A program made the translations under genes and the position numbers. A stretch of 64,000 nucleotides of DNA from NCBI RefSeq assembly GCF_001194135.2, contig NC_068982.1, positions 112,687,623 to 112,751,622 on the forward strand, in the 5' to 3' direction. The notes beneath the pieces were generated by a model, which was not told where the DNA came from, did not search any database, and was given only the letters and a program-made list of their open reading frames with translations. The stretch's first letter is position 1. Each line of letters begins with the position of its first letter. Shown here in pieces: positions 24,251 to 53,355 of this stretch. The stretch comes from Octopus bimaculoides. Lineage: Eukaryota.

Positions 24251-24312
24251 CTCGTTTGTCTATCTGTGTATCCCTTTTGACGAAACGCATCAGCTTGTTC
24301 TTTTGTTTCGAT
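24251..24312 (-). CDS. Exon 5 of the minus-strand gene (62 nt; I-SKQKNKLMRFVKRDTQIDKR if entered in phase 2)
   Basis: Acceptor CTCTCTCTGCAG and donor GAG|GTGGGT. Phase 2 entry matches exon 4. A second frame (IETKEQADAFRQKGYTDRQT) is also open. Confidence 0.6.
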
Positions 24313-26147
24313 CTGCAGAGAGAGCCTTAAATCTGAACTGCAGATCTGATTTACACAGTGAAGATAAGTGCATGCTTAATATAAGTAAAAACGTAAATTA
24401 ATTTACAGTTTGTATATACATACCCACACACACATACACAGTCATATACACACGTAGTCACATACACACGCTTTGTTTAGCCACACGCATAAAACATATA
24501 AAATGTAAATATAAACAAATATATAATACAGATTGCAAATATTTAGGGTAGATAAACGATTTTTTAATATACATCGAATTCTTTCTTGGTACAAAGAATC
24601 ATGTGATATAACTGACTGATGCAATGTAATAAATGTATTTCCTTGAACTGAAGTCTTAAATAGTTCTCTTTTAATTTTAAATATTACCTATTACCGAAAT
24701 TCACATTAATATGCTGTTTCTTTTCACAATCAACACAACATATGAAAACAGTAAAAGGGATCAAAGTGTGTTCATAATACAGGCAGAATAAAGTCTCTTT
24801 CTCTCTCTCTCTCTACCATTAGGATAATAATTTCTTTCCTTCTGGACATGGAAGCCCTGTATAATCCAAAACTAAAACTCAAACGCGCAACAACTTCCTG
24901 AATTTCTAGAATGTCCTATTTCCCAGAGTCGTGACTACAATTCACTCTTAATCCTTCTTTTGTTGGCATAGACAAACCCCTCGATCCTATTCTTCCTTTT
25001 TTCCCCAACAACCAAACTACAAAAGTTCGAGATGAATCTCAACTTCTTGCTATTACCGGTTCCACAGTTCCACATGCAGCCCTTTATGAAACCAAACTTT
25101 TAAAATGTTAATCTAAGTTAATATTTACAATGATCAATGCTTTACTTTCAATGTTTATTCCAATCAATGTTACAAAACTGATGATCAGCGCACAAATAAC
25201 TGTGGAACCTAAGATTCATCAATTCTGAGTAAGCAGTATATTGTGCTTCTAACAATGAACAATGTTATGTAAAACGGATGGTTCGTACTTTTGGTCTACT
25301 TTAATCTATATTGCTATTTACGTTGTAACAATTTCAAAACAGTATGTATGATTTATATGAAAAATATAGATTTGTTTTGTTCATTCTGATAGTTAGGTTT
25401 CTATGTCATCAATACAAAACAAATGATTCACCACGCTTATAACATTGGATATAAGAGAGATACGGGCAATTTACTGCTGGTTTAACACTTAAATTATGAC
25501 TTTTGATTTTACACAGACACATGTCAACTTTTTCAAGCAATACATTCCATTTTAAAAATAACATTGTTTTAGAAATATATATATATATATTTCAGATTAA
25601 ATCATAGAACATGAATTATTGGAACTACAATTGCTCGATGGAAATTTGATGCTATACAAGTAAATGGGGAATAGTATTTCATGTTCAGAAATAAACAGCA
25701 AAACTAAATCTATAATTCACTCGATACTAGTTTAAAACATTGATCAGAAGTGAAGTAAGACTGTAGCAAATATTCGTAGAAATTACTACTATTAAATATA
25801 AAGTTATGGCTATGCAGAAATGTGTTCACAGAGAAACGGTACGAGAAAACAAGAGAGAAAATAAATAGGAAAGGAAAGCAAAGCGAGGTTGATAGAATAT
25901 TATAATATAATAAAAAAAAAACCTGAGATGCAGAAAGTGAATTCAGTGAAAGTGAGAGATGGATATAAAAGAGGCATATTTTAAAAATAAAGAAATAGTT
26001 TAAACATCAATGTTGTTTAGAATGTGATATAAAAAGTGTAATATGTTCTCGATTTGGTTCTAATTAAACATGTAAGTTGACAGATATGTTCAATTTATGT
26101 GAGCAGGTTTACATCTTATGCTCTCTAGTTATCAAGGGAATATTTAC

Positions 26148-26246
26148 ATGGTATAAATCTCATTGCTTGGATCAGTGACATAGATAATGTTGCCCCGTGC
26201 GTGCTGTTGCTCATTTATCTGTAAACCAGCCTTTTCATTCTGAATA
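26148..26246 (-). CDS. Exon 4 of the minus-strand gene (99 nt; R-IQNEKAGLQINEQQHARGNIIYVTDPSNEIYT)
   Basis: Acceptor CATTCCTGTTACAG and donor AT|GTAAAT. Only the phase-2 frame is open, matching the exon 3 donor. Confidence 0.7.
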
Positions 26247-26342
26247 CTGTAACAGGAATGTGATAGATTATCATGGCTCATATACAATGTGACGTGATAA
26301 ATGTTATATTCTTCTCAAACATATTCTAACAAAGAATAACCT

Positions 26343-26344
<2 letters not shown>

Positions 26345-26403
<59 letters not shown>
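26345..26403. repeat. (TTTC)n microsatellite
   Basis: Directly visible. Confidence 0.95.
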
Positions 26404-26405
<2 letters not shown>

Positions 26406-28140
26406 GTCTGTCTGTCTTCATTCTTTTCTTGTTCAAATACGTTTCAATTCAGAAGGAAGAATAGACATTTTCGATACGAGTGGAATCTTCATTTGGAGCA
26501 GATGGTGGTAGGTTATCAAAGTTATTGAATAAAGAACAAATTCAACTTCTCGAATTGGAATTGTTCAAATATATGTTATATTTGTTTTCAAAATATCTAA
26601 GTTTGTACAAAAAATAGATTGACATGAAACGAAGCAGAAAAAATATATTGGAAATTCCTAAAGATTCTATATGCACGTTTCATATACTATCGAGAGATAA
26701 CAGATATCAAGTGTTACTCCTTTTTGCAAATATGTAAATATCTGGAATAAAGTAGATATAGCCATGTATCTGCTAATTTGGAAATTATTTATCATTTACA
26801 TAAGAGAGAAGTGTTGTAAAGCAGGAATGAACTGCAATTAATGCGATGATATACCGACATGGTACACCCCCCCCCCACACACACACACAAACACACACAT
26901 GTATACATTGGATGTTCAAACAATGTATGTTATGAAAAAGCGCATTTAGTTCATTATCTTGTTACATAACAACTTATAGAGGAATCAAAATTCAATTAAT
27001 GGTATAAACAATCTTAATAACATCAGAAAGGCAACATTTTAGGCGAAGCTCGATTGTACAACATGATTATCCAAGTAAATATCTTGAGGACATATTAATT
27101 TGTTTTGTGTACAGACACACTTTAATTAAATTTCCTATCCTCTGTTGTTTTCTTTTTATCAGTGTTGTTTTATAATACATCATGATGGACATAAGGTTTT
27201 ATTCTTAACAAAAATTCCTCAAAACTATCAGGTGCATGGGAATGGATAACAACGTCCAAATTAAGATTTGTTGTTTTCTTATTACAGTCGGTGTCATGGT
27301 GATTGAATGGATCACTGCTTAAAAGTAACATTGTTTATTAGAGCTATTGTATATTTTGTTGTTGATACATCAACATCAATTTCATTATGGCCAACTGTCC
27401 CGTTGTATCATCGTTTGAAGTAGTTTACTATATTTCTTAACTTCCCTTCGAGAATCATCGAGGGATCGTTTAATTGGCACTTTGACATCCCTAAACTCGC
27501 AGCCTAGTATCTCAAATATGCCAAGAGCACGTTAGCAATATCATCATTGAGACCACTAAAATAATAGCATGATCAAGTTTCTTCTACATAAGATCTCAAA
27601 TGACGCTAAACAACTAAATAACTATCCTCCCTATCCAATTAGGATATAGCAACGTGGTCGTCGGCTTGCAAGAAATATCACCAAGACTTCACTCAAATTC
27701 TCATCTTGGACAATGCACCCTTAACAATACTACGTCTAGATAAAAGTTGGTAGTAATCATTGCTAGAACCACTTTTAACCTATGGCTGCTTAGCCATGAC
27801 TTGCAACGAAACTGCAACAACAATTTTTGCTCACTGTAAACATTTTCTTTTACAACATATTAGACTAAATGCAAGCCTTACAAGTCAAATCTTTGAGATT
27901 TTTTAAGTATCCAAAGGGATCATATTTGTATGCACAAACAATGATCTCTGTCACTCGGAGTTCGATTGTTCAGTACCTCCTCCACCCAGGTACTTTTGAT
28001 TCCCTAATCTTGACTTTTCTTATCACTCAATTATGTCCAACACTCAGTCCACACTAACCACTGCGTAATGGTGGCTGCCAACTAATAATTGTTATAATCA
28101 TTGGTTCGTGAAGAGAATTCGTTGAGGAGAAATTGCAAAC

Positions 28141-28212
28141 ATCAGCATGCATCAGCACGGCAGGCAGATATCAACACGCATCAGTACGGCTGGCAGCATC
28201 AGCACGCACCAT
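28141..28212. repeat. Short degenerate tandem, ~2.5 copies of ~28 bp (ATCAGCACGCATCAGYACGGCWGGCAG)
   Basis: Directly visible. Confidence 0.6.
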
Positions 28213-28782
28213 CACAGTTTCTTAGCAGAATCCTATAAATAAGATCCAAAATCTCTTGTTAGATTTAATAACCTTAGATAGCGTTGGCTGAGGAGACACA
28301 CAACAAAGTCGACACAGCCGGTCCCAAATCTCCTACCTCAATGAATCGAGTGTGTTATGAAACTAAATACAATGATTAGCATATTCATGTTTGGATCTAT
28401 AAGAAAGTATTAAGAATGAAGGTATATATCATCATTTGTTTCTTGCTATTCACTGTCCACATATTGATTTATTAAGGATATTAAAATCACTAGATTCGGC
28501 GGGGAACTGCGAGTCTACGGTCATTATTCCTTCCTCTAGACCTACTAATTATAAACAAATTATCCATGTCTTTTTAAACATTGTTTAGCTCACTTACAGT
28601 GTTTAGTTTAAAATATTGTATTTTCATCAAATTTAAACAAACTTGTGTAAACTAGCAGTTGGATGACTACTGAGAGCTAATAGCAGTTCATGATTACTAT
28701 TTTTATAGGGTCATATATAAAACATTTAATTTATTAGTCATCTGACTCTCCCATTCAGTTTTATTCATTGATTTGACATTAC

Positions 28783-28913
28783 CGCATTACATTATCAAAC
28801 ATTGATTCAAGAATGTTAAACGATTGTCTCTCGTGAGAACGTTCATGCAGCAGGCTTCGGGAACGCGAAGCTGCTTTCAGGAAAACGCCAGCCGGTTGAA
28901 AGGTCTTGTTCAA
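28783..28913 (-). CDS. Exon 3 of the minus-strand gene (131 nt; LNKTFQPAGVFLKAASRSRSLLHERSHERQSFNILESMFDNVM-R)
   Basis: GC-raised open frame (track ORF 28779..28964), acceptor TTCTTATATCAG, donor CG|GTAATG; phase 0 to phase 2. Confidence 0.7.
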
Positions 28914-30120
28914 CTGATATAAGAATTTGCTAGTTGACGAACAAGAATGCCTTCTAGCTGGCAATTCAATTTGGTATGTAGTTTATTGAACTTTAATGAT
29001 CACCTGCTGTTTTAGTTACGTTTAGAAACGCTGTATGACGAACTGACGTCATTCCACTAGCGTAATTAGTAGAGCGTTAGAAGAGTTCATACAGCTAAAA
29101 CAGTGTGAAATGTGTTACAGACGCATTCAGCAGAGATTTTTTTTATTATTTTGACGAAGTTAAGTATAATCCTGTTCAGAGAGCTGTTACTTCATTCGTT
29201 CCCTTGGCTGCAATTAGTAAAGACAATACTTTAAAAAAAAAATGAGATTTACTAATTCAATTTAATTTACATTTTATTCCTTTATCTGTATTTAGTTCGT
29301 TGAACTGCACGCAGAAATAATTCCTCACATGAATGACTTTATAATCAATGAACTGAATGTTAAGAACAAGCCATAAGATAATTTAGGAGGTGCGATCTAA
29401 ATTTAACATTTCTTTGCGTGCAGCTTTCAGGCAATAGAAAAAAAATTATATTTTAGAAACACATTAACGTTTTAATAGGAAACTTCGTATTAACTGCTCG
29501 TAGCTGTGTCTACTCGAAGATAGAATTAATATTAATACCAAATTTACAAACAATTTTTAAAAAACTTCTAGTCTCACATGAAAGCGGAAATGAAACAGCA
29601 GAAGAGTCCACAGTTAATTCAGACCTTACCTCAACAAATAATACGAAGTATACAGGGAAATAATGCAGTTAGAGTCAATTATACATAGAAACAGTTTAGT
29701 GGCTGGACAGAAAACATGAAGTAACACCTTTACTTGGATAGAGTCTCGGAGCAGAACGATTGGTTTATGGTAATCTAGAGCTGCCAGCGTGTAAATGACA
29801 GAACGAGGAGATGAGGTGTACTGCTTTGATTGGTGTGTAATCGCTGAGCCCAAATATTTTCACGAGAATGTCAGTTTCCATTGCTTATAGTCTTTATTTC
29901 TGGAATTCAATTAACAAACCTGACTAATGCTTGAATTAGCTTCTTGAAAGTATTTGTAGTTACAAAACAATGAAGCAATAAAGGGGATGTTGTCTATGCG
30001 AGCATTTGAACTGTGATAAATGACAGCAAAATCGCTCTCAAATCACAGCTTAGAAATCGAATATTGTAGGCCTAGGTAGATTTTGATTGAAAAACAGAAG
30101 AGAAACCCCTGATGCGAACA

Positions 30121-30190
30121 CCTAACCCTAACCCTAACCCTAGCCCTAACCCTAACCCTAACCCTAACCTTAACCCTAACCCTAATCTAA
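30121..30190. repeat. Interstitial telomere-type (CCCTAA)n/(TTAGGG)n tract, ~11 units
   Basis: CCTAACCCTAACCCTAACCCTAGCCCTAACCCTAACCCTAACCCTAACCTTAACCCTAACCCTAATCTAA. Confidence 0.9.
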
Positions 30191-30624
30191 CAAGGGAGAA
30201 CTAGCTAGCTCAACTAGAACAACTTAACCACAAAGTGAGGACGAGGACAAATATGCAAGTCCTTATGAGTTTCGAAATAAGGTTATTGAGTTTTATAACA
30301 ACGATCATATATTGGATTTACGTTCACAAATAAGCAACTGAGGGCTAATACTCCCAGCTGAATGCTGAATAATACCTTGTGGCATCATCGGAGTCTCGAA
30401 TATGAAGCGCAATTTATTTGGGAAAAAATTATAGTTGTTCATATGTGCGAAAAGGCATTATCGTAAATTCATGATAATTTCATAACATGATCATTTATTC
30501 CTTTGTCATCTCTGTGTCTTATTACCGCTCTATACTCGTCTGACACTTCGTTATGAAGAATGCATGTACTGAGTTTTATACCAGGTTATTAGTCTCGCAA
30601 TGCCTAAGCTTAATAGATTTACAT

Positions 30625-30855
30625 TCTTTTACTTGTTTATTCTTTTACTTGTTTCAGTCATTTGACTGCGGCCATTCTGCAGCAACACCTTTGGTTGAAC
30701 AAATCTATCCCAAAGCTTATTCTTTGTAAGCCAAGTTCGTATTCTATCGGAATCTTTTACCGAACTGCTAAGTTACGTGGACGTAAACACACCAACATCG
30801 GTTGACAAACGATAGTGGGGGGACAAACACAGACATAATATAATACATACATACA

Positions 30856-30939
<84 letters not shown>

Positions 30940-31090
30940 CATTTACGACGGGCTTCTTTCAGTTTCCGTCTACCAAATCCACTCAAAAGGTAGCCCTGAG
31001 GCTATAGTAGAAAACATTTGCCTAAGGTGCCACACAGTGAGACTGAACCTGGAACTATGAGGTTGAGATGCAAGCTTCTTACCATACAGC
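30625..31090 (-). mobile_element. Near full-length tRNA-derived SINE (octopus OR1/OR2-like) with internal (TA)n
   Basis: On the minus strand: head GCTGTATGGTAAGAAGCTTG...GGTTCAGTCTCAC, core GGATTTGGTAGACGGAAACTGAAAGAAGCCCGTCG, (TA)n, body, and tail GGCCGCAGTCAAATGACTGAAACAAGTAAAAGAAT with a duplicated tail unit. Confidence 0.85.
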
Positions 31091-31156
31091 TTACGTAATT
31101 AAATGCAGATACTAATTCAAGACAAGGTTACTTATTTGATGATTATAGGAAACGTC

Positions 31157-31162
31157 ATGATA

Positions 31163-31215
<53 letters not shown>

Positions 31216-31266
31216 GACGACGACGATAATGATCACGGTATTGTTGTTGTTGGTGGTGGTAATGAT
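31157..31266. repeat. (GAT)n microsatellite grading into GAC/GTT/GGT triplets
   Basis: Directly visible. Confidence 0.9.
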
Positions 31267-34095: not shown

Positions 34096-35149
34096 TTTTT
34101 CTCTCTCTCTCCTTATATATATATAGAGAGAGGAAAGCGTGGTAGTGAGAAGGTGGCAGCGGACATGTGTGCGTGATGTGAAAGTGAACACAATAGGAAT
34201 GAAAAAGGTGCTGCTGAAGGTAAATATACATGGCTATTGACTGTGAGATGCTATTGGTGGAGAAATGACAGAGGAAATGAGAAAGAATGCAGAGCATCTT
34301 GAGAGTCGAAAGAGGGTAACAAGGTAATAGCTAAGGTTAAAATCCAGATATGATTTACGTAGGGGAGAAATCGACAGAAAAAGTGGAGTCAGAACGGGTG
34401 GCGTGGTATTTTGCGTGAAGAAAAGAAGAGGAACAGGAAAAAGGAGAACTCTTTAGCAAGAGAGCGAAGCGTGTGTGTATGTATATGTGTGTGTTTGTGT
34501 TAGCTAAAGAGTTAGTTGAATACAATAATCAAACAAACCATGAAGGCGTTAAATACAATTGACAAGCGAGGTGGATGTCGTAGAGTGGGAGTTGATTGTA
34601 TGAGTACATAAGGAAACGCCTGAGTGCTAGTGTATGTACGCTAATGGGCGAGTGTATTTTTAGTGCAGATGTGTGTTTATATGCATGTTTGGGAACAGCG
34701 TATTAGTGGCTATGTATCTGTGAGAGAGACAAGAAAATGTTGATAGGTTTGTACATTTGTAAGCGTAGGGTACACGTGGGCGGAGAGTAGATATCTGTGA
34801 ATATGCATGTGATGGCAAGATGCTGTTTGTGGGTATGAGTGTATGTTTGTCTGTAGACGTGGTGTTGTACGTGGAGGTGTCGGTGAGACAAGGTGTTGAG
34901 AGTGATGAATTTTATGTATGCCTGTGTATAAGTGACAGTTGCAAAGGTGTCTAAGTTGGCGTGGAGTGCATGTGGAAATTGTATGAGTGTTGTAAATATG
35001 TGGTTGGGTGTGAAGGTGGGATATGGATAGTAGAGAAGGATGTGGGTATAAGTGGATGCGTGAGAACTTCGTAGACAAGTGAGGGGAGATAAAGGATAGG
35101 GTGTATAATGAAGGGGCTGGTGATGAGAAAAGGTAGTTCGAAGAAATGA

Positions 35150-35474
35150 GGGGGAGAATTGAAACCCACGAAGCATACACGTTTAAAGTGGAAAATGAGC
35201 CAACGTTCCCTCTGGAGGCGACTGGTAGAAGTTCCAGTGGTGGTAGCCCTGACGGAGAACGTGAGATGGTGGATGGAACAGTTAGCTGAGCACAAATGTC
35301 GAGAGACATGTGACTTGTTGCAAAGTCAGATGACTGTGAGGTGCCCCATAAATCTGTCAGCCGGAAGACGGGCGGTTTGCGCGATTGCAGATACATTAAG
35401 GGCATATGTATATATATATATATATATATNNNNNNNNNNNNNNNNNNNNNNNNNNNNNNNNNNNNNNNNNNNNN

Positions 35475-35514
<40 letters not shown>

Positions 35515-36080
35515 GTTATTAAAAGTGAAGCGAAAGACGTTCTTAGTATGGAAGGTGCAAAGGTTGACTCTGGAAAGGATGATGGTGACGGAAAAGAAAA
35601 AGCAGGCACCACTCTGGGACAGGAAGCAAGGAAGAGGGAAGAGATCTGGAAAGGAGCGGGGTGGTTAAGGTGCTATGAATGAAAAGGCTGTGAAGGATGC
35701 CGATATGCTTGAAGTAAAGAATGGCTGAAAAAGGAAAGAAAGAGGAAGTGAAAAGATTAGATTGGAGGCACTGGGAGAGGCGGAGAATAAAGCGTTAAAA
35801 TGAGAGAGTTGTAGGGTGATTTGCAAGAAGAAAGAGTAGTATTCTGGATATGAAGTTTTAGGGCTGTGGTGTGATCAATGGCCCGGATGCAAGTGAGAGC
35901 GGAATGGATAAAGGGGAGGAGCACGTACTTCGAATGAAGCAACGATCATGGTTACTATTGCAGAGGCACCAGAGGCGAAGGAACTGGTAGTAGGGGATGG
36001 AGTTCTTGATGTGGGTGGAGTGTTAGGAGAAATCAAGGTACGAGTGGGAGCTAGTGTCTTTTAATAAGACGGTGATGTGG
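35150..36080 (-). mobile_element. Second Penelope-like element relic (RT thumb plus GIY-YIG)
   Basis: Minus translation: 'KDTSSHSYLDFS*HSTHIKNSIPYYQFLRLWCLC' (Penelope K.TDSHSYL...S.HP.H.K.SIPYSQFLRL motif), 'SALTCIRAIDHTTAL', then after a (TA)n/gap 'AQTARLPADRFMGHL...VSRHLCS...RLQRERWLIFHF...GFN' (GIY-YIG). The purine-rich 34200-35150 is probably its 3' region. Confidence 0.75.
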
Positions 36081-36630
36081 AAATGAAAGATTTTATCGGT
36101 CATGAAGAACATAAACTGAAATATATTTGTTACTCAGTGTAACCGGCATATAAGCATTCATATTTGCGACCTATCCTCGTTCCCACAAAAAAACACATAT
36201 ATTTATACACATGTATCTATATATGTGTGTGTGTGTCGGTGTGTATGTGAGCATGCATACCGTTCGATGAGGGGCTGGAAAATAGTAAGGAGTCAAAATT
36301 AAACTAGATACAAAAGAAGGAACAAACATATCGCAGGATATATTCCAACAAGAACTCATTAAAATATTCGTGAAATGTTTCCTGCAGTCCAGTTTAAGTG
36401 TGTCTCACTACCGTTTATTATTAATTGTGACTCACTATCGTTAATTATCAACGAAAAAGGAATTTGGTAGACTACTTTATTTCAGGTGAAGTGTTTTTTT
36501 TTTTGCTCTTTTTTCTTTTTTTTTTACCAGTGTTACGTATGCAGATCGAAATGACAGGTCGTAAAAGAAGATAGCTGTCTTTTGAAGATTGCAGTATAAA
36601 ATTCTGTTGCTTACTTGACATTGTACGTAC

Positions 36631-36769
36631 CATGTCAAGCAAGCACCTTACTATTTCATCTACTGTTAGAATGGTAGATGAAAAATTTTCAGCAAGATCT
36701 AATGGCGGCAAATGACAACAGCACTTCTTAGATGGCACACGATGGCGTTTAGATATGCAATATAGTGAG
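36631..36769 (-). CDS. Exon 2 of the minus-strand gene (139 nt; S-SLYCISKRHRVPSKKCCCHLPPLDLAENFSSTILTVDEIVRCLLDM)
   Basis: Acceptor GGTTTTCAG in phase 2 matches the upstream donor; donor ATG|GTACGT is phase 0. An alternative in-phase donor ATA|GTAAGG would end the exon at 36652. Confidence 0.7.
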
Positions 36770-39635: not shown

Positions 39636-40664
39636 ACCAGTTATCTGAAACTAGTAATTCGTCATATTTCGGTGAGCAACAGTGCCAAATGTGTAATAAG
39701 TCCCACATGTTCCTTTAAATTACATATTTCGTGGTAGGATGCATCTTTTCTTAACCGTATACAAAGGAGTTATTTTAAGATTGAAATAGACCAACTTACA
39801 GACAGAATACTTAGTTATTGACTTTCTAGATTTTGAAAGCTATTTCAGGTGTTATTTGCAAGAATAAACTTTTGGTTCTCTAAAACGGAGAGAACGGTGT
39901 GACTCTTTCAAGGAGAAGATAAATTAAGACGTCACCCAATGAGTGTGGTAGATTATAACAGAGGTATTTATTTTTTCAAAAGGAAATTAATTAATCTATA
40001 AATGTAGCATATCCACTGATATGTACAATGATTTAAAAAGCAATTTAAGGTGAAATCTTATTTTATTAATAGCTGCATGTCAAAAGTTAGTAATAACTTG
40101 CTGTCGACTAGGATTCAATGAAATTAATTAGAGGAGATAGAAAACTGAATTACTGTCCAATTACTTGGATATATTGATCAGAAGTTTCATTGATTTTACT
40201 TGAGATAACGTTGGAAAGCAACTAATAGAACCATATGGGAAAGTAGGGGATGATGGAAATCCTACAGCTTCAAAGTATGTAGTACTAATGAACATCATGC
40301 AATTTTATTGAGAGGAAAGTGCTTGTATGTTATATAACTTGCGATTCTAACGGAACTATGATGAAAACCTACAGGCTGACAAACACTTCAGGGTATATGT
40401 TGTTACATTGTGGTTTCTCAGAAGAATATCAGACTTTTCTGCTAGTCATTGCACATAAATACTATATCTTATCATGTATAACGGGAGCATCAAAGGTTAA
40501 TCATTAACCCGAGGGAACACTTATCACTAATTGAGTAAATTAGAAACGCCGAGGGTGAATTTTTCACCTAAAGATTTTAAGGAGCAAGCACAATTTAAAA
40601 AATGCAGTCGCTGAATATATTCAAACTTTATCATTCTTTCTGTTATGATCAACATCAACGTGAA

Positions 40665-41606
40665 ACATTTGATGCTTCAAAAAGTATCCGACTTCATACT
40701 TTCATGCCAGAGAACTAATGTCGTGCAGGCACGTCCTTTGGTTTGGGGATGACGCCACCCTTCTCCCCCATGCTCACAAATTACCGCGCCGGTATAAGGC
40801 TTCATTCCCTAGTATGCCGGTATGCCGCTTCAGTTCAGTTACACCTAGAGGGCGAATGTGTAGTGCGCGTTCATTAGACTTTCGCTTTCACTGAATACAT
40901 CCTGCAGAGGCATTGCATCAAGTTTTGTTGAAAGGCTAGTGATACTCAAGCTCAAACCATCCAGAAATTTCAGCAGCCCTTTGGCAATGAGGCCATGGGT
41001 AAAGCTCAGATCAAGGAGTGTTACAACCGCTTTAAACATGGTTGCATTTCGGTGGACAGTGAGACATGCTCAGGCAGGACATCCATAAACTGAAGCGAAG
41101 AAGCTGATTGAGATGGTTCGACAAACAGTCATAGGAGACCGTCGTGTAACAATCCAGGAAATTGCTCACAAAGTGGGAATAAGCACAGGATTAGTGCGTT
41201 CTATTTTAATATAGGATTGTGCACTCGGAGAGTGTCGGCGAAATTCGACCCCAAGTTGCTGGCGGAGCGGCAGAAGTAATTCCTCATAGAAATCGCTCAG
41301 CACATGCTGGACTGTGCAAACCATGACCCAGGCTTCACGAAGACCACCATCACATGTGATAAGACAAGGGTCTATGGTCTCTGCTCGATGCATTCTTTCA
41401 TCTTGCTGGAAAAGGAAAATCGTTCGAGCACGCACCACGCGTCTATACTTGAGGGGTAACAGCAAGTAACTGGCCCTGCCTACCTGTGCGAAAGTTTTAA
41501 TGTGCACGCAGGAAGGGTGAAGCCACTTCCGACTGAAGAGTTTGCCCATATGGCTTAGTTTTGGCGGAAAAAAATGAAACTAAATACTTTTTGAACGCAA
41601 CTTGTA
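40665..41606 (+). mobile_element. Decayed, internally deleted mariner (Tc1/mariner) DNA transposon
   Basis: Remnant inverted termini TTCAAAAAGTA (40676-40686) and TACTTTTTGAA (41585-41595), ending in ...CTTGTA, enclose a transposase pseudogene. Confidence 0.8.
40905..41378 (+). pseudogene. Mariner transposase pseudogene, N-terminal half
   Basis: 'QRHCIKFC*KASDTQAQTIQKFQQPFGNEAM...ECYNRFKHG...GDRRVTIQEIAHKVGISTGLVRSIL / RRVSAKFDPKLL...QK*...DPGFTKTTITCDKTRVYG'. This covers the HTH regions, the RVSAKFVPKLL linker variant and a degenerate ITGDETW first catalytic motif, with stops and a frameshift. Confidence 0.9.
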
Positions 41607-43399
41607 GAGGAGACGACAGTTGTCTACCATATTTCCCAAATGAAAACCAGATGAAACTGCACAGTGTAGAAGTAATTGTTTTGCAGTTCTTAAGAGGTTA
41701 TATACTCGACTGATGTACTTTTAGACGAGAATGCATGCACATACTCACACATTCTTACAAATACACTTACACACATATGTGCATTTATATGAGCATATGC
41801 ATGTAATTTACAGCTGACTTATATCGTTTTATATTATATATACAGTATATAATGTATCAAACTACTGTTTAATTTAATATTCGTACGGGACATCTTGAAA
41901 CACCTCACAATTCTCTAAAATAGTATGATTCATACCTCAATAGAGATGCATGGTATAGTTGTTTCTGAATATGTACTATGCTTTTAAATAAATTTTATCG
42001 CTTCTGTATACATCAAATTTAATAATTCAAATTATGAAATCTACCGCCAATAATGACACACCATAGGCGTAAAAGATAAATGAGTTTTCATATAAGTTAA
42101 GGAATGCCATATAGACCATATAATGCTCTAAGCCTCATTAATATCGTATTGGTGACCTGTGCTGTCCCAGAAAGCAGGGACTTCGAATCAAGAACTCTAA
42201 GCCTAGAGCGTATATCAGCTTCTCATGAAGGCTTAGAATGTCTCATGGAGTGAGCATAAGACCATTAAAGATAGTTATGGACACCTTTCCTCCATCTCTA
42301 AAACTGTTGATTGAGATTCCTAATGGAACGTGGGGAAACACCTTTTAGTTGTGTCCATATTAATATCAGCTAAAATATTTGGAAATGCCGCACCCATCTG
42401 TTTGTTGAATCAATAACACCTATTTTACTTTTAAAATAATAGGAACCAAATTATCCTTTTACCGTAGTCTGTCAAAATAACAAAAACAATTCTAACAGTT
42501 GTCTGGATCTCAAATATATGAGTGTGCAAACACGAATCTAAAAGTCTAACTTGACCAGCCTCTTACTTTATAATGCACTCCATATAAAAAGACTTTTCTA
42601 GTTAGACTTTATTCATGTCCTTTATATAATCTAAGATGATGCCTGTACCATGGAGACAATTTATTTACTCATTAACAAATTTGTGAAGTAACTATGCACA
42701 AAAAATACAAAATTTCTCAGTAAAATAAAGACAATGCAGTTGCAACAAAAGATCGCAATTTCAATCACCCAATCACACTTTCTAACTACAGATATTTGCG
42801 AATATGTCCTTCGGAAATGAAGCCAGTATCGTTGTTACAATATGTCCTTTACATGAGATCATGTTCTATACATGATTTTTGAGGCACTGTAGGATGTCTC
42901 AAATAGTAGTACCGATCAAACAATATTTTTATGCAGCTTCTTAGACATGGTCTAATATTGCCAGCTAAATGATCCCTAGTATTTATCGTTGAGTATGAAA
43001 TTATAAGTATATTAGATGATGCCTTACATAATGGAATATGGTGTCATGATGGCATAATGTGATGACGTGTTATTGCAATGTCCGTTAAATGAGTTATACA
43101 TTGATGTCATGCATGGTGTCACTAAGAGTGATGTGTTATCATCAGGTTTCTTATATTTTCATATAATATATAACTGATATAATGATGTGTATTGTCATTT
43201 AATACCATGGACGGCATCGTGAGGTCGCTGAAGAGAAGAAACGCAATAAAATTTAATGTATTGCACAATCCAATAGAAACAGTGTAAAGGATTGAATGAT
43301 AGACGAAGATAATAAACTAGATTGAAGAATATAAAAATATGACACTCATCACTATATTATGCTTACATGTACTCTTATCTAAAGAATTTGAGGTTGCTT

Positions 43400-44428: not shown

Positions 44429-44470
<42 letters not shown>

Positions 44471-44978: not shown

Positions 44979-45225
44979 TTTAGTTATTCAGATTCCTTCA
45001 ACTGATAACATCTCTAACATTTCCCCAAAACATTAACAAATGGACAACATTGATTTTAATAGATTTTGATGATACGTGTTTGTGTGCGTGCGCGCGCGCG
45101 TGTTTGTGCGTGTGTATGTGTGTGTTTATATATATATATTTGTATATATATATGCATGTAAGTTTTTTACGCGTATATATCAATATATATATATATACAT
45201 ATATATAAATATGCATATCCATATG

Positions 45226-45284
<59 letters not shown>

Positions 45285-45691
45285 NNNNNNNNNNNNNNNN
45301 NNNNNNNNNNNNNNNNNNNNNNNNNNNNNNNNNNNNNNNNNNNNNNNNNNNNNNNNNNNNNNNNNNNNNNNNNNNNNNNNNNNNNNNNNNNNNNNNNNNN
45401 NNNNNNNNNNNNNNNNNNNNNNNNNNNNNNNNNNNNNNNNNNNNNNNNNNNNNNNNNNNNNNNNNNNNNNNNNNNNNNNNNNNNNNNNNNNNNNNNNNNN
45501 NNNNNNNNNNNNNNNNNNNNNNNNNNNNNNNNNNNNNNNNNNNNNNNNNNNNNNNNNNNNNNNNNNNNNNNNNNNNNNNTATATATATAGGGAGAGGGTG
45601 TGAGGGGAAGAGAATCAGAGTGGCAAAGACAGAGAAATGTTAAATAGACTGATAGATAGAGATAGATAGATAGATAAATAGATAGATAGAT

Positions 45692-45746
<55 letters not shown>

Positions 45747-47767
45747 CAGAGACAGAGAGAGAAAGAGAAATAGCTTGATATACGTATGATATACATAGTA
45801 ATGTATTATATCATATTATATTTATACATACAGATACATGCGTTTACACACAGAAACACAGAAGCGAGCATTTAGCTACTGCTATGTATGTCCATATACA
45901 TATTATCAATGTTAGGATCAACAATGTATTCTTATAAAACACATAGAGACATACTTATATACACATTATAACCAAACTCATATACAACTATTGACGCATT
46001 TTCACAGGTATATGTGTGCATGCGCGTGAGTATGTTTATGTATTTATATTGATCGTCTGACAGTGAAAACTATAGAAATTTATACGCATGTAGATGTATT
46101 AGTAGAGTACAAATCAATAGATATATGGATAGCTATAGTAACAACTAGAACAATGTGTAATATAGATTTCTCTCATTGTTGTATAGACTCAGATTTTTTA
46201 GCGTGGGTGTAGTAAGAGATGTTCTACTGTGTACAGTGTAGCATTTAGTATTAGATCTGTATATGAAGTAAGTAAAATGTCTATATCCAGGAATCGAAAG
46301 AGTGTCGCGATCTTCATTGAAAAGAAACTGTACCACGAGTAAATTTACATTTATCAAATAAATATATATATGCTTTGGGGGCAAATGCCTAAATTTGGGT
46401 AAAATTAACGTCAAAATATGTAGAAACAAAACCTGGCTATATATTATTTATCTAATACATATATGTATGGATATATGCATAAATATATATACATCATATA
46501 TATATATACATCATATATATATATATATATACATCATATATATATATACATCATATATATATNNNNNNNNNNNNNNNNNNNNNNNNNNNNNNNNNNNNNN
46601 NNNNNNNNNNNNNNNNNNNNNNNNNNNNNNNNNNNNNNNNNNNNNNNNNNNNNNNNNNNNNNNNNNNNNNNNNNNNNNNNNNNNNNNNNNNNNNNNNNNN
46701 NNNNNNNNNNNNNNNNNNNNNNNNNNNNNNNNNNNNNNNNNNNNNNNNNNNNNNNNNNNNNNNNNNNNNNNNNNNNNNNNNNNNNNNNNNNNNNNNNNNN
46801 NNNNNNNNNNNNNNNNNNNNNNNNNNNNNNNNNNNNNNNNNNNNNNNNNNNNNNNNNNNNNNNNNNNNNNNNNNNNNNNNNNNNNNNNNNNNNNNNNNNN
46901 NNNNNNNNNNNNNNNNNNNNNNNNNNNNNNNNNNNNNNNNNNNNNNNNNNNNNNNNNNNNNNNNNNNNNNNNNNNNNNNNNNNNNNNNNNNNNNNNNNNN
47001 NNNNNNNNNNNNNNNNNNNNNNNNNNNNNNNNNNNNNNNNNNNNNNNNNNNNNNNNNNNNNNNNNNNNNNNNNNNNNNNNNNNNNNNNNNNNNNNNNNNN
47101 NNNNNNNNNNNNNNNNNNNNNNNNNNNNNNNNNNNNNNNNNNNNNNNNNNNNNNNNNNNNNNNNNNNNNNNNNNNNNNNNNNNNNNNNNNNNNNNNNNNN
47201 NNNNNNNNNNNNNNNNNNNNNNNNNNNNNNNNNNNNNNNNNNNNNNNNNNNNNNNNNNNNNNNNNNNNNNNNNNNNNNNNNNNNNNNNNNNNNNNNNNNN
47301 NNNNNNNNNNNNNNNNNNNNNNNNNNNNNNNNNNNNNNNNNNNNNNNNNNNNNNNNNNNNNNNNNNNNNNNNNNNNNNNNNNNNNNNNNNNNNNNNNNNN
47401 NNNNNNNNNNNNNATGCCCTCAAACACACATACACACATACATACACATACACACATATATAGGCATGTATGTATATTTGTATGTTCTGTAAAGAACCAT
47501 ATAGTGTAGGAATTTACATATACGTATAGCAAAACCTGATCGTTTATAATAACAATGTAGTGCACTATGTTCTAACATATTTCACCAGCTTCGCATAAGT
47601 ATGTATAAAGTTAGGTTATACATAATTATTATCTTTAGTTTACATAGATCGCTGTAGTTAATGATTATATATGTATATCTATATGTCTCACTCAATCTCG
47701 CTTTCTTTCTCTCTATGTGTATATATATACGTACATACTTACATACATACGTACATACACACACACA

Positions 47768-47801
<34 letters not shown>

Positions 47802-47894
47802 CACATATACATACACATACATACATGTATATATGTATATATGTATGTATGTGTTATCTTTTATTATTCATTTGTTTCATAATCGTACAGCGGT

Positions 47895-48030
47895 CATTGA
47901 CCTCATTGCTTTTGTTATTTACAAAGTCTGGTACTTATTCTAACGGTCAATTTCGCGGAACCGCTAGGTTACGGGGATGTAAACACACGAACTCCGATGG
48001 TCAAGCCTTGCTAGGGCAAACACAAGCGCA
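47895..48030 (-). mobile_element. SINE body fragment (octopus OR-like)
   Basis: Reverse complement contains GTGTTTACATCCCCGTAACCTAGCGGTTCCGCGAAA...GAATAAGTACCAGACTTTGTAAA, homologous to 4880-4940 and 30710-30800. Confidence 0.7.
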
Positions 48031-49703
48031 TTTTTGCACACGCGCACGCACGCGCGCACGCACGCGCGCACACACGCACACATACATGCACACACACACA
48101 CACACACACGCACACACACACACACACACATGTACACGCACATGATGGCTTAGCAGGCCGAAACTTCGAAGTTACTGTCAATACTCTTTTTGTTAAAGAG
48201 AAATAAGAAATTTATGCTCAACCAAATGCTTTGAGTAATACTTCAAACATACATACATACATACATGCATGCATACATACATACATACATACATACATAC
48301 ATGCATACATACATACATACATGCATACATACATACATACATACATGCATACATACATACATGCATACGTACATACATGCATGNNNNNNNNNNNNNNNNN
48401 NNNNNNNNNNNNNNNNNNNNNNNNNNNNNNNNNNNNNNNNNNNNNNNNNNNNNNNNNNNNNNNNNNNNNNNNNNNNNNNNNNNNNNNNNNNNNNNNNNNN
48501 NNNNNNNNNNNNNNNNNNNNNNNNNNNNNNNNNNNNNNNNNNNNNNNNNNNNNNNNNNNNNNNNNNNNNNNNNNNNNNNNNNNNNNNNNNNNNNNNNNNN
48601 NNNNNNNNNNNNNNNNNNNNNNNNNNNNNNNNNNNNNNNNNNNNNNNNNNNNNNNNNNNNNNNNNNNNNNNNNNNNNNNNNNNNNNNNNNNNNNNNAGAA
48701 ATAAGAAATTTATGCTCAACCAAATGCTTTGAGTAATACTTCAAACATACATACATACATACATGCATGCATACATACATACATACATACATGCATACAT
48801 ACATACATACATGCATACATACATACATACATACATGCATACATACATACATGCATACGTACATACATGCATGCATGCATACATACATATGTACATAGAT
48901 ACATGTATATAAAAACGATGACAACGTAATATATGTTTTAGAGCTAGTTGTGACTTTTGATGTACTGATGTAAAATACCTTTTACAGTACTCTGTTATTT
49001 AGAACCCTTAAAGTAGCCAGCCCAATTTACAGACTAATGCATACTTCTACTGGTTGTGATTGTCACAGTCATTGACCGGTAGCACGATGACTCATTTCAA
49101 TTACACTGTATAGCACATACTAGTTTCCCTTTTTGTATCATCACCCATTCAAATGTCAAATACGGTAATAATATGAAGAGCATTATTCATTTATTATTGT
49201 TAATAATATTTTATTATGTAAAAATAGTAGTAGTAATGTTATCATTATTTAGAACTTTTTTTTTTCTTTTTTCCTTTTGGCTGGAATCTGAGTCAGCAGC
49301 ATCATTTTCATCAAAGAAAATCCGAAAGTAGAAAAAAACATGATGGTACTCATTTCTCAAAGTGCCCGAAATACGCGCTTAATTGGTAATCCTGTATATA
49401 CATACATGCATATATATATGTATATAGGTACATGTGTGTATAACGTGTAGTACCCAATAACAGTTTCGTCGTTGGGCATTCAAACGGATCAATCTGACCA
49501 CCTATTTGTTAAATAAAAGTGTAAGTGGTTTAGTATCCAAGACACGTGTAGCCGTCTGAAAACCGAAATGAGCATGGCACCATGTGGGACAAGGCTGAAT
49601 CTTTGAGTAAAACTCTTTCAATAAGCTTCCATTCATAAATTTTTTGACGTGTGTGAAGCAAACCCCTTAATCACTCGTTTATAGCTGGATCCACATGTAC
49701 ATT

Positions 49704-49740
<37 letters not shown>

Positions 49741-50429
49741 NNNNNNNNNNNNNNNNNNNNNNNNNNNNNNNNNNNNNNNNNNNNNNNNNNNNNNNNNNNN
49801 NNNNNNNNNNNNNNNNNNNNNNNNNNNNNNNNNNNNNNNNNNNNNNNNNNNNNNNNNNNNNNNNNNNNNNNNNNNNNNNNNNNNNNNNNNNNNNNNNNNN
49901 NNNNNNNNNNNNNNNNNNNNNNNNNNNNNNNNNNNNNNNNNNNNNNNNNNNNNNNNNNNNNNNNNNNNNNNNNNNNNNNNNNNNNNNNNNNNNNNNNNNN
50001 NNNNNNNNNNNNNNNNNNNNNNNNNNNNNNNNNNNNNNNNNNNNNNNNTATATATATATATATGAAATGAAAAAACAACGAAAATGATATTGATGAAATG
50101 CAAAGCCGCCCCTGAGACTTGTTTCACTAATCAAATTTTTATCTCTTCTCACAGGGAATTAACAGCCGTTGACAGATTTCAATTTATTGAAGGACGTCGA
50201 CGTATGAACATCATAACAACATGTTATTCGGTTGTTTCCGTATATAAATGTTATAAAAAATAATTAACTCCAGCTCTCCTATATTTACTTCAGCATCAGG
50301 AAGCTGTTATTTCTAGTCAGTTTCGTTCTGTCATTTATGTCGTGAGGGATCATCCGAATTAACTGAAAGCCAAACACGGTTCCTGTGCATCCTGTAAGAA
50401 TCATGCATTTGATAGCTGATGGTTGATAG

Positions 50430-50632
50430 TGAATGGTGACATGATTATGATGATGGCAGCGACGAAGGCGATGATGACAGCAATGATGGCGATGGTGATG
50501 ATAAGTGGTGGCCGTGGTGATGGTGGTGGTAGTGACGGTGACGAGGTTAGTGCTGATGGTGGAGGTGGTGGTGACGGTGCTGATGTTTGAGGTAGAGGCG
50601 TTGGTGGTGGTGCTGGTGACGTTGATGATTAT
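50430..50632. repeat. Cryptic GAT/GGT trinucleotide low-complexity tract
   Basis: Directly visible. Confidence 0.8.
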
Positions 50633-50737
50633 ATATGGTTACCACAGATACATTCAGACATGCTTATTTGTTTGCATATATGCGTTTGCATGTATACGCA
50701 CTACACACACGCACATATACATATATACATATATATA

Positions 50738-50809
<72 letters not shown>

Positions 50810-51130
50810 TACATGCAGTTATATATATAGTAACACACACACACATACTCACACACACGCACACACACATATATATATTTACACACATTCATACCTTTCT
50901 ATCTATTTATCCATCTAATTATATGCAGACACAAAACCACAGATGCACAAACACGGACATACATACGCTTAAATAAAGTTAGGTATGTTCCCGCCAGTAT
51001 TGGTCCATGCAACCTCTAAATTTTGTTGCTTCTATACACAAACACACACACACACACATACACACACACACACACACATATGTATATATGCATAAATTCA
51101 CACACACACACATATACATATATAATAGCA

Positions 51131-51180
<50 letters not shown>

Positions 51181-51996
51181 TGCTGTTATATATGTGTGAG
51201 CTTAAGATTCCATCAATTCTTTTTCAACTGAAGTAAGCATATGCAATATATTTAGAAACTGAAGTTTTAAGTACTCCATTAAGCTTACAGTATCAAACTT
51301 TATACACCACGTGTTCACACATACTCTGAAATATAGTTTCGCTGAAAAACAGCATTTGTATATGACATGTTGGTGTTTTCGCTAAATTTGATTGATATCT
51401 GCATTTCAGATAACAAGCATGCTACCATGGAGTAGACGATTTTATTGTTGATGTCAACACTCAACCAATGTTGTCTGGCGGGAAATTCGTTCTATGTGTA
51501 AACACGAAAGCCTACATGCTTTCTCTCAAACACACATGAAGAAGGACGTGTATATTTGCACATTTGCATTTCTATACACAATTCTGCATTCATAACTCAA
51601 GCCAGTTACTAAAATCTCATTATTGTAAAATGAATTTTTGATGATAAATATACATGGGGTAGAGACACATTTAATAGTTAAGAAAATCTTGTTCTGTATT
51701 TTGTCCAACCGGAAGCCTTACTTAAGGAACTGTCAACCGGGATAAATTATAGTATTTGAGTGACATATTAACGAGAGGATATAAATAATGACATAAAGAT
51801 AATGACCAATGTATTTCATCGTTATATACACTGATAAAACTTACATTTACATAAACATTTATGAGATCTGCTTCGTTGTGCATTAAACTAAACTGGAACA
51901 TATGCATGTTTACGTTTACTCATTCATAATACATACACATACACGAACATAACATCTATTTCTATCTATTGACATATATGTATATAATATATAAAG

Positions 51997-52031
<35 letters not shown>

Positions 52032-52121
52032 ATATATATTTATATATATACAGGCATACTATGTGCACAAATATTTATGTTTGTGCATACTGAATGCTGA
52101 TACATCAATGTTAAAGCCCAC

Positions 52122-53355
52122 CTTTTATTTGATGTGTCAAACGCCTTTGGGGTTGCAATGGTGACTCTCTTGGCTGATTCGTCCTTACGCGGTAGGGCTA
52201 CCACCGGGATTTCTTCCAGAACCGTAATATCTTCGTCCAAAGATGGTTTTGAGGGTAGTTTTCGGTTCAGAGACCTACTCTTTCCCATGGAACACATATC
52301 ATAACTACCGCTACATATGTGTCCTGTTGTCGTAGATGTCTTTTGAGTTCTCGCGTCCTTGATGGATCCGGAAGTTAAACTTTGAACAGGGGGACCTACT
52401 TTATTTGTTTGTTGTAAATTTAAGTGAGAATGGTTGGGTTGAGGAGGGCGTTGGGGGTGATGATAGATAGGTTGGGGATGTTTTTGGTTTGTTGTTATTG
52501 TTACAGTAGGTGTTGTAGCTGTAACAGAGGTAGATGATCCCGATAATTTTTTGTTATTGTTATTGTTGTTGTTGTTATTGTTATTGTTATTGTTTTTATT
52601 TTTGCTATTCTTGTTGTTGTTATGATTGGGCGGGGAGGTACTGGCGACCCCGGTGGCGGTGCCGTTGGGTGGGAAGTCTCCAGTTGATGAAGTAGCAGAT
52701 GGTAAAGGTGAAGGTTGATGGTGATAGAGTAAATGTGGTGACCCAGTAATGGGTGTTGTGGGGGAAGTGAGGAGGTGTTGTTGGCCCGTAGGGGAAGGTT
52801 GTAGGAGCTGAAAGCTTTCCAGGCCGCTACTACGTGTGGGTGTGTCTGAAATAATGGTGTCAGTGGTACTAGCTGGCGTGTGGTGTCTTTGGACTTGGGA
52901 TGCCGATTGCTGGATGTTATGGTGGTTGTGGTTTTGATGGTTAATATGTTGTGGCTCGGTGGTGGTGGTGGGGATGTGATTAGTCTGGCTGTTGTGATGG
53001 GGATTGGGGTGGGGTCGGGTGTGATTATTTTGAGTTTCGATAATTTTGCTGTTTTTATTGTTATGCAAATCTTGCAGAGGTTGAGGTTTTTGTTTTTGTG
53101 GTTGTTTATGATCTTGATTTTGTTGTTGATACTTCGGTGATGTTTGATTGCTAATTTGTCGTTGTGAGGTGGGTGGTGGCGGAGCCTGGCGGCGTTGTTG
53201 ACGTTTTTGTTGGGATCGGTTATCAGATAATTGGTGTTGCTTATGTTGTTGTGGTGCCAGTTGGTGAAGCGGAGACTTGGGGGGTGCCGGGGCGGTCTGT
53301 GGAGGTGGAATGGGGGTGGTTGGAGAGGGTGCAGAGGAGGGGGTGAGTGTGGAGG
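52122..53355 (-). CDS. Large exon (3' part, after the 10-N gap) of the unidentified minus-strand gene: ~410 aa Q/H/P/T/S/N-rich disordered region ending ...LDEDITVLEEIPVVALPRKDESAKRVTIATPKAFDTSNK
   Basis: 1.23 kb stop-free frame with raised GC, a poly-Asn run and a complex C-terminal segment. Donor AAG|GTGGGC at 52122/52121 (phase 2) is phase-compatible with the exon at 36769. Confidence 0.75.

Follow-up and report, generated by a model that had tools for sequence, protein, structure and literature searches.

A large candidate first exon and a phase-matched chain of small exons without statistical weight on the minus strand of an AT-rich locus

Among the five pieces proposed as consecutive exons of one minus-strand gene, only the large exon 1 looks like a genuine part of a gene. 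The phase-matched chain that joins it to four small exons is without statistical weight because pseudo-exons occur in the same DNA at about 100 per strand and can be linked into legal chains of 25 (minus) and 31 (plus) members. What is reasonably supported is a large initial coding exon, covering at least 52122-53355, that encodes a disordered region and ends at a strong GT donor. The window referred to below is the whole 64,000-nucleotide stretch of DNA that was analyzed, and the pieces are the following, the last having been added in this analysis.

52122..53355, minus strand: exon 1, the part after a 10-N gap, a long open frame with a strong donor
36631..36769, minus strand: proposed exon 2, 139 nt, phase 2 in and 0 out, SLYCISKRHRVPSKKCCCHLPPLDLAENFSSTILTVDEIVRCLLDM
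28783..28913, minus strand: proposed exon 3, 131 nt, phase 0 in and 2 out, LNKTFQPAGVFLKAASRSRSLLHERSHERQSFNILESMFDNVMR
26148..26246, minus strand: proposed exon 4, 99 nt, phase 2 in and 2 out, IQNEKAGLQINEQQHARGNIIYVTDPSNEIYT
24251..24312, minus strand: proposed exon 5, 62 nt, phase 2 in and 1 out, SKQKNKLMRFVKRDTQIDKR
23601..23746, minus strand: speculative exon 6, which keeps the proposed frame, SDPKYHSGFVPLPLKPLNFGGSSSVIKLLGKGERRERYKGSKLGLKEM

Exon 1 encodes a low-complexity region rich in P, T, S, Q, N, and H, followed by a tail of more ordinary sequence (...LDEDITVLEEIPVVALPRKDESAKRVTIATPKAFDTSNK); 57% of the residues in the exon are P, T, S, Q, or N. The open frame containing the exon extends over 437 codons (52043-53353), and a single stop falls in this frame versus 10 to 32 in the other five. 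In 300 shuffles of the same composition, the longest open frame averages 112 codons and never exceeds 229. The third codon position is enriched in T (0.26 versus 0.13 and 0.13). The frame closes at a stop at 52040-52042, 27 codons beyond the proposed donor at 52122. The donor, AAG/GTGGGC, scores 10.3 bits, ranks 4th of 1,893 GT sites, and is positioned where the protein-like sequence ends; the final roughly 55 residues of the exon are not of low complexity and have a protein-like score of +14 bits. Since the donor is top-ranked, some downstream exon is expected. The frame contains only two Met codons, both ∼60 codons ahead of the donor, and the first about 375 codons after the 10-N gap are devoid of Met. 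A GC- and CpG-rich stretch just upstream of the exon (54141-54701) is compatible with the 5′ end of a gene. No homologue of the 140-aa exon 1 tail was detected by HMMER among 1.84 billion representative proteins. The original prediction described a disordered N-terminus, a description that the length of the frame relative to the shuffles and the top-ranked donor reasonably support.

The sequence facts claimed for the chain are reproduced. All four small minus-strand exons carry a [CT]AG acceptor and a GT[AG] donor, the phases follow 2-2, 0-0, 2-2, and 2-2, and the coding sequence joined in the proposed frame contains zero stops and translates into the quoted peptide, letter for letter. Exons 2-5 thus have the AG acceptor and GT donor that U2-type GT-AG splicing requires of each internal exon, and the joined exons form a single open reading frame. 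The further claim, that the chain is better than chance, is not borne out by the comparisons described below. As the reading frame is still open at the end of exon 5, which ends in phase 1, the gene would run on below 24251. The introns in this model would be of the GT-AG type with lengths of about 15.4, 7.7, 2.5, and 1.8 kb, in order, and the small exons at 36.7, 28.9, 26.2, and 24.3 kb would supply about 145 residues. The resulting peptide may read as two amphipathic helices followed by a beta-hairpin; by eye, the hydrophobic spacing of an amphipathic helix appears to run across the exon 2/3 and exon 3/4 junctions.

The chance expectation was assessed in the interval 24.2-52.1 kb with pseudo-exon thresholds set at the weakest claimed exon. 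At those thresholds, the minus strand of the interval contains 100 distinct pseudo-exons and the plus strand 125, and the longest phase-compatible chains consist of 25 and 31 exons, respectively. When 749 minus-strand candidates are ordered by a combined score of splice-site strength and amino-acid composition, the claimed exons rank 5, 54, 103, and 212, and the plus strand offers about as many candidates with scores this high. A small gene-finder gives the same picture, with the best plus-strand control chains scoring at least as well as the best minus-strand chains. A pseudo-exon at 29630-29702 has a junk-like translation, yet its splice sites equal those of exon 5 in strength. Stop-free stretches of at least 40 codons number 678 in the window; the open stretches containing exons 2 to 4 span 56 to 102 codons. 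No excess of exon or splice signals over non-coding DNA of the same composition was found for the chain, in which only exon 1 and the splice sites of exon 5 stand out. In AT-rich, intron-rich DNA, stop-free runs of phase-matched GT-AG junctions are expected to arise by chance on either strand, and such a run should be given evidential weight only when transcripts or conservation back it.

The four small exons differ in individual quality. Exon 2 (borders ttttcag/ and ATG/gtacgt) is the weakest member of the chain and is unremarkable: its acceptor scores 3.1 bits (84th percentile) and its donor 7.6 bits (98.6th percentile), its combined rank is 212, a slightly stronger, frame-breaking rival donor is present at 36615, 16 nt further downstream, and the open frame continues for 52 codons beyond the proposed donor. 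Exon 4 (tgttacag/ and CAT/gtaaat) has an acceptor of 6.9 bits (96.5th percentile), a donor of 4.1 bits (90th percentile), a codon-position score in the 96th percentile, and a combined rank of 54.

The best individual candidates among the small exons are exons 5 and 3. Exon 3 (tatatcag/ and GCG/gtaatg) has an acceptor of 1.0 bit (72nd percentile) and a donor of 5.5 bits (94th percentile), and its combined rank is 103. It lies in the 93rd percentile of pseudo-exons for GC and the 98th for CpG, with nine CpG (observed/expected 1.36) versus 2.2 per 100 nt in the flanks, and the first CpG beyond its low-coordinate end is 265 nt away. Exon 3 is a sharp local GC/CpG island confined to the exon. Exon 5 (ctctctgcag/ and GAG/gtgggt) combines an acceptor of 10.1 bits, ranked 12th of 1,531 AG sites, with a donor of 11.1 bits, ranked 2nd of 1,893 GT sites, and it also reaches the 98th percentile for CpG. 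It contains a second open frame, IETKEQADAFRQKGYTDRQT, with a better composition than the proposed one; its combined rank is 5 in the proposed frame and 1 in the other.

Considered as a group, the small exons have GC contents of 0.39-0.45 each versus 0.28-0.35 in the 600-nt flanks. The amino-acid composition of exons 2-5 lies in the 77th, 91st, 88th, and 89th percentile, respectively, among 734 pseudo-exons, although these percentiles are not independent evidence because the exons had been picked for their protein-like look. The codon-position composition of the chain exceeds that of 93% of random sets of four pseudo-exons (p about 0.07), again for exons pre-selected by eye. The speculative exon 6, chosen by the small gene-finder, would join exon 5 through a Val codon (G+TC). 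It has an acceptor of 8.0 bits and alternative donors of 8.2 (23601), 6.9 (23624), and 4.5 bits (23578), and it enters purine-rich simple sequence; chains on the control strand lengthen as readily by the same procedure. Paralogues of the small exons were not found elsewhere in the window, where their flanks gave microsatellite matches only, and none of the four matches the transposon fragments found in the window.

The assembly is interrupted by the following gaps, none of them assigned to a strand.

53356..53365: assembly gap, 10 N, which truncates exon 1 on the 5′ side
45285-45579, 46563-47413, 48384-48696, and 49741-50048 (span 45285..50048): four gaps in proposed intron 1
35430..35474: gap in proposed intron 2, with (TA)n on either side

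Upstream of the 10-N gap, all three minus frames are of low complexity and none is demonstrably linked to the frame that follows it. The '805 aa ORF' in the list of open reading frames is an artefact that was read straight through this gap. The five other gaps are all intronic in the model and clear of the exons, which leaves the reading frames uninterrupted by them. Three gaps are flanked by (TA)n on both sides, and unique sequence is present on one side of 46563-47413 and 48384-48696. Four of the gaps separate exon 1 from exon 2, which counts against placing the two in one gene; the length given for intron 1 is nominal, and further exons may be hidden in the gaps.

Homology and domain searches are silent throughout. 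The peptide has no homologue among 5.8 billion proteins searched by k-mer and HMMER methods at E ≤ 1e-3 and at E ≤ 10, no NCBIfam model matches at E ≤ 10, and the PDB at E ≤ 10 returns one match only, an unrelated coiled-coil effector (E = 0.23). JGI metagenome contigs give no match, and the peptide strings do not occur in the full text of papers. The introns, searched for Rfam matches and tRNAs as indirect evidence of a host transcript, contain none. The downstream minus-strand open stretches, 3,245 aa in all, contain no repeated units or recognizable domain, and the PDB gives nothing for them at E ≤ 1. The silence of the homology searches says little because a control query, an intact transposon reverse transcriptase (RT) fragment, lacks close matches as well: its best match is 67% identical and all of its matches are short metagenome ORFs, indicating that this genome and its close relatives are absent from the databases. 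The ENA contig holding the best RT match shows no DNA similarity to the window, and its source is therefore not a close relative.

Several identities were considered for parts of the locus. The faint likeness to NHL or GAF strands noted in the original prediction finds no profile or solved-structure match in NCBIfam or the PDB at E ≤ 10. An NHL propeller is built from five or six blades in tandem, each about 40 residues long; the peptide contains only one beta-hairpin-like stretch. The helix and hairpin region resembles the start of the PDE8 PAS domain by eye only. An assignment to PDE8 (REC-PAS) was rejected, as blastp and tblastn with human PDE8A/B queries, in which errors are possible, gave noise only, with non-collinear matches at E values of about 0.5 to 3 at best, and no PDE8 catalytic exons were found within the window. 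The 7-mer ENFSSTI occurs both in exon 2 and in an endonuclease-like fragment located at about 23.1 kb, and the DNA encoding it differs between the two copies at three sites, all in third positions. The derivation of exon 2 from a LINE (non-LTR ORF2) endonuclease is nevertheless unsupported, since the alignment falls within the shuffled-peptide null; the best local alignment score of exon 2 in the window is 39, below the shuffled-peptide mean maximum of 42. Candidate PH-domain exons downstream, 'EERGEWERKYFVL' (18.3 kb) and 'IEEYYRVITMRQAIHLEATTNEWLISVIKEY*' (2.3 kb), were matched by eye only, and the PDB gives nothing at E ≤ 1 for the downstream open stretches.

Most likely, the locus would be the 5′ portion of a protein-coding gene that lies on the minus strand and is ordinary, rich in introns, and restricted to its lineage. 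We infer that the exon 1 transcript may be spliced onto small exons 2-5, and we hold tentatively, at somewhat short of even confidence, that exon 1 shares one real gene with most of the small exons. Its product would be a protein with a disordered N-terminus and a small alpha/beta module; a regulatory or scaffolding role is a guess made with low confidence. The folded helical/beta region would be contributed by the four small exons, which generic measures cannot tell from chance pseudo-exons. An unlikely reading is that of a real chain whose product, restricted to cephalopods, has a very long disordered N-terminus fused to a C-terminal module lacking detectable sequence relatives, either a fold or a highly diverged PAS/GAF-like sensor. 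A serious, if somewhat doubtful, alternative is that exon 1 is real and the four small exons are chance pseudo-exons in AT-rich intronic or intergenic DNA, the true continuation lying at other acceptors, inside a gap, or beyond the window, or the frame simply running to its stop at 52040-52042. The abundance of decoys and legal chains on both strands, the unremarkable ranks of exons 2 to 4 (212, 103, and 54 of 749), the weak acceptors of exons 2 and 3, the competing frame-breaking donor of exon 2, and the commonness of open stretches like those around exons 2 to 4 all favor it, as do the lack of a homologue even at E ≤ 10 and of any domain in the downstream 3,245 aa. Against it stand the unusually strong splice sites on both sides of exon 5, a GC/CpG island restricted to exon 3, the placement of all four small exons in the upper quarter for composition, the codon-position test, and the top-ranked donor of exon 1.

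That no gene is present, with the 52.0-53.4 kb frame a by-product of stop-poor low-complexity sequence that is A+C-rich on the minus strand, and the rest due to chance, is quite improbable. The strong compositional bias of exon 1 and its long Met-free run are in keeping with such a by-product, the less biased 140-aa tail is without a homologue, and a GC-richer low-complexity block at 34.7-35.6 kb is likewise open in several frames, for 114 to 300 codons. In contrast, exon 1 is open in one frame of six, at twice the best of 300 same-composition shuffles, displays codon-position periodicity, and becomes protein-like in its last roughly 55 residues up to the top-ranked donor, features that favor a real exon.

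In PAS/GAF sensor modules, the fold is a five-stranded antiparallel sheet with flanking helices. The segment '...FNILESMFDNVMRIQNEKAGLQINEQQHARGNIIYVTDPSNEIYTISK' shares the helix-then-beta-hairpin spacing of the start of such a domain, a likeness judged by eye that serves as a lead, but a whole domain is larger than the about 60 residues available here. Pseudo-exons of long introns resemble the small exons in their short open stretches with acceptable AG/GT edges, in occurring by the hundreds in the window, and in forming in-phase chains on either strand; unlike most pseudo-exons in the window, exon 3 is a CpG/GC island and exon 5 has very strong paired splice sites. Taxonomically restricted (orphan) animal genes in which small exons, set apart by long introns, come after a large low-complexity first coding exon share with this locus a biased long frame, a strong donor, kilobase-scale GT-AG introns, and no detectable relatives, and the proposed introns here are full of microsatellites and transposon debris. 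Membership among orphan genes is shown by transcription or conservation, and this locus is a candidate for it. Orphan genes whose first exon is of low complexity are numerous in cephalopod-type genomes; if true, the preferred reading would add one more unannotated, probably lineage-restricted gene to such a genome, which would be of value for annotation and no surprise.

The original prediction, made from sequence alone, placed a five-exon gene on the minus strand at 24251-53355, and as a description of the sequence it is accurate. Direct inspection bears out GT-AG borders at the four small exons, with a [CT]AG acceptor and a GT[AG] donor in 4/4. The joined frame is free of stops, the resulting peptide is identical to the one quoted, and the phase chain 2-2, 0-0, 2-2, 2-2 is reproduced in the proposed frame. 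With exon 5 ending in phase 1, the frame is predicted to run on below 24251. The window is AT-rich (GC 34%) with 13 N runs, and the proposed exons are as follows.

Proposed exons, with border sequence (slashes mark exon edges)
52122-53355, minus strand, exon 1: low-complexity open frame rich in P, T, S, Q, N and H, then a more ordinary tail; 3' end at 52122, AAG/gtgggc
36769-36631, minus strand, exon 2: ttttcag/...ATG/gtacgt
28913-28783, minus strand, exon 3: tatatcag/...GCG/gtaatg
26246-26148, minus strand, exon 4: tgttacag/...CAT/gtaaat
24312-24251, minus strand, exon 5: ctctctgcag/...GAG/gtgggt

The four phase-matched junctions had been offered as evidence for a gene, a use that fails against a plus-strand control on which equal or better chains arise. 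Pseudo-exons, open stretches whose AG and GT edges meet exon criteria by chance, were defined by thresholds set at the weakest claimed exon: a [CT]AG acceptor with at least 55% upstream pyrimidine, a donor matching at least 5/8 consensus positions, and a length of 60 to 200 nt with at least one open frame. In the 28-kb interval, 100 distinct pseudo-exons pass on the minus strand and 125 on the plus; the longest phase-compatible chains that they allow have 25 exons and 31 exons, respectively. A combined score, consisting of approximate metazoan splice-site matrices and amino-acid-composition log-odds, ranks exon 5 5th, exon 4 54th, exon 3 103rd and exon 2 212th among 749 minus-strand candidates; on the plus strand, about as many candidates equal or exceed the scores of the claimed exons. 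A small dynamic-programming gene-finder was run on these scores at three exon penalties, and on both strands it assembled chains between 7 and 35 exons long. The plus-strand control equalled or exceeded the minus strand at every penalty (190.8-197.3 vs 162.3; 86.2-91.0 vs 75.0; 35.9-37.6 vs 30.2); the proposed chain totals 52.5 bits. Strong splice-site pairs number 36 on the minus and 29 on the plus strand, and the minus strand is not enriched. As a chain, the proposed exons are not more than chance, and the phase-matched junction argument is without evidential value in sequence of this kind.

A real minus-strand gene probably starts at exon 1. Its frame is open for 437 codons after the adjoining gap, with 10 to 32 stops in the other five frames, while shuffled sequence (n=300) gave open frames that averaged 112 codons and never exceeded 229. 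Codon position 3 is enriched in T, and the tail has a composition score of +14 bits. The donor (10.3 bits, rank 4/1,893 GT sites in 33 kb) falls at the exact boundary between this non-repetitive, protein-like tail and microsatellite-like sequence, and a GC/CpG-rich stretch (54141-54701) lies just upstream of the exon. A weak point is methionine, which is absent for ∼375 codons after the gap and occurs only twice in the frame. Low-complexity blocks at 34700-36100 and 50380-50680, GC-richer than their surroundings (up to 0.53-0.57), carry, on both strands and in several frames, open stretches 100 to 300 codons long; biased composition alone can therefore yield long ORFs in the window. The absence of any gene here, a reading to which such blocks lend some weight and which the shuffle control and the donor oppose, is improbable.

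Whether most of the small exons belong to the gene starting at exon 1 is close to evenly balanced, leaning slightly against. The best candidates are exons 5 and 3 and the worst is exon 2. The exon 5 acceptor ranks 12/1,531 and its donor 2/1,893, but two frames are open and the other reads better than the proposed one. Exon 3 is a local island (9 CpG in 131 nt, o/e 1.36, GC 0.45) in flanks with 2.2 CpG per 100 nt and GC 0.33. Among pseudo-exons it lies at the 91st percentile for composition, the 93rd for GC and the 98th for CpG, exons 2, 4 and 5 lie at the 77th, 88th and 89th for composition, and the codon-position composition of the whole chain is above 93% of random four-pseudo-exon sets, the exon percentiles being not independent of the way in which the exons were chosen. 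The exon 2 acceptor scores just 3.1 bits, the peptide of this exon is junk-like over its first half, and a slightly stronger rival donor at 36615, 16 nt downstream, would break the frame if used. A 38-nt near-perfect palindrome (36608-36645, ∼89%), centred on GTACGTAC, overlaps both donors and might fold into a hairpin spanning the exon 2 donor in the pre-mRNA. The main alternative, in which exon 1 is real and the small exons are pseudo-exons, is a serious if doubtful possibility; it accords with the abundance of chance chains and sits less easily with the splice sites of exon 5 and the island at exon 3. A 73-nt pseudo-exon at 29630-29702 (minus strand; 10.1 and 11.5 bits) has splice sites as strong as those of exon 5 and a junk-like translation, TKLFLCIIDSNCIISLYTSYYLL; if used, it would shift the frame between exons 2 and 3. 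A possible sixth exon (23746-23601, minus strand) keeps the proposed frame and adds no weight, since chance chains extend equally.

All five flagged gaps fall within introns of the proposed gene (four within intron 1, the fifth within intron 2), and no reading frame passes through one. Three of them have (TA)n flanks on either side, and the other two border unique sequence on one side only. The intron lengths and the joining of exon 1 to exon 2 are putative, and further exons may be hidden in the gaps. A sixth gap of 10 N (53356-53365) forms the 5' limit of the proposed gene and truncates exon 1. Upstream of it, all three frames read as low-complexity sequence, with no demonstrable link to the frame downstream; an 805-aa ORF from a mechanical ORF list spans this gap and is not meaningful.

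The proposed introns contain microsatellites, transposon debris and low-complexity blocks. Putative mariner/Tc1-like transposase remnants, degenerate and frameshifted, were seen by eye within intron 1 at ∼40660-41700 (plus strand, shifting frames; KECYNRFKHGCISVDSETCSGR, DPGFTKTTITCDKTRVYG), with no PDB match at E <= 1. A LINE endonuclease-like fragment, also identified by eye, lies at 23020-23170 (minus strand; DEFYENFSSTIKSIPVSEQLVLLGDLNARV). It and exon 2 both encode the 7-mer ENFSSTI, and their DNA differs there at third positions only; the match scores within the shuffled null, and the idea that exon 2 derives from a LINE endonuclease was dropped. Two short interspersed element copies (23190-23290 and 23790-23890, minus strand; ∼85% identical over ∼110 nt) lie a short way downstream of exon 5, each beside (CA)n simple sequence. 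Further downstream, a tandem array at 14252-14645 (period 69 nt, 5.8 copies, 77% matches) gives rise on each strand to open frames of repetitive sequence (...LETPFDVLHHAFADV...). Two minus-strand open stretches look by eye like parts of a PH domain, one like its start (EERGEWERKYFVL at 18296-18356, before a GTGAGA donor) and the other like its C-terminal helix (IEEYYRVITMRQAIHLEATTNEWLISVIKEY followed by a stop at 2230-2330, after a ttttatgcag acceptor). With no database support, these PH-domain-like exons were dropped. The open minus-strand stretches downstream, together 3,245 aa between 18.4 and 0.8 kb, have no solved-structure match at E <= 1, and the window contains no Rfam families or tRNAs. 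An intact non-LTR retrotransposon reverse-transcriptase fragment (63761-64000, plus strand; ...GIFQSDSLSPLLF...YMDDLKLF...) runs past the window end; it has 126 matches with the Pfam RVT_1 domain, the best 67% identical, and in PDB it weakly matches R2 retrotransposon proteins (E = 0.004).

The database check named in the original prediction returned no family for the joined peptide in protein, PDB or NCBIfam searches. The spliced 198-aa peptide has no match at E <= 1e-3 among 5.8 billion proteins, the 231-aa version with the possible sixth exon none at E <= 10, and the contiguous 140-aa exon 1 tail none by HMMER among 1.84 billion representatives. The single PDB match is unrelated (E = 0.23), no NCBIfam family matched, JGI metagenome contigs gave no confirmed match, and the peptide strings are absent from the full text of the papers searched. 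The reverse-transcriptase fragment served as a control query: its best matches are just 67% identical, all are short ORFs of ENA, JGI or Logan (lgn) assemblies, and one matching contig has no DNA similarity to the window. Such distant matches show that the source genome and its close relatives are missing from the collections, so the negative searches are nearly silent on conservation within cephalopods. A PDE8-like REC-PAS identity was dropped after comparison with human PDE8A/B query sequences, which may contain errors, gave only noise. At the level of sequence similarity, all that the negatives show is that the peptide cannot be recognised as belonging to a widespread family. The predicted product would combine a disordered N-terminus with a small helix and hairpin module, and the gene, even if real, would be an ordinary unannotated one.
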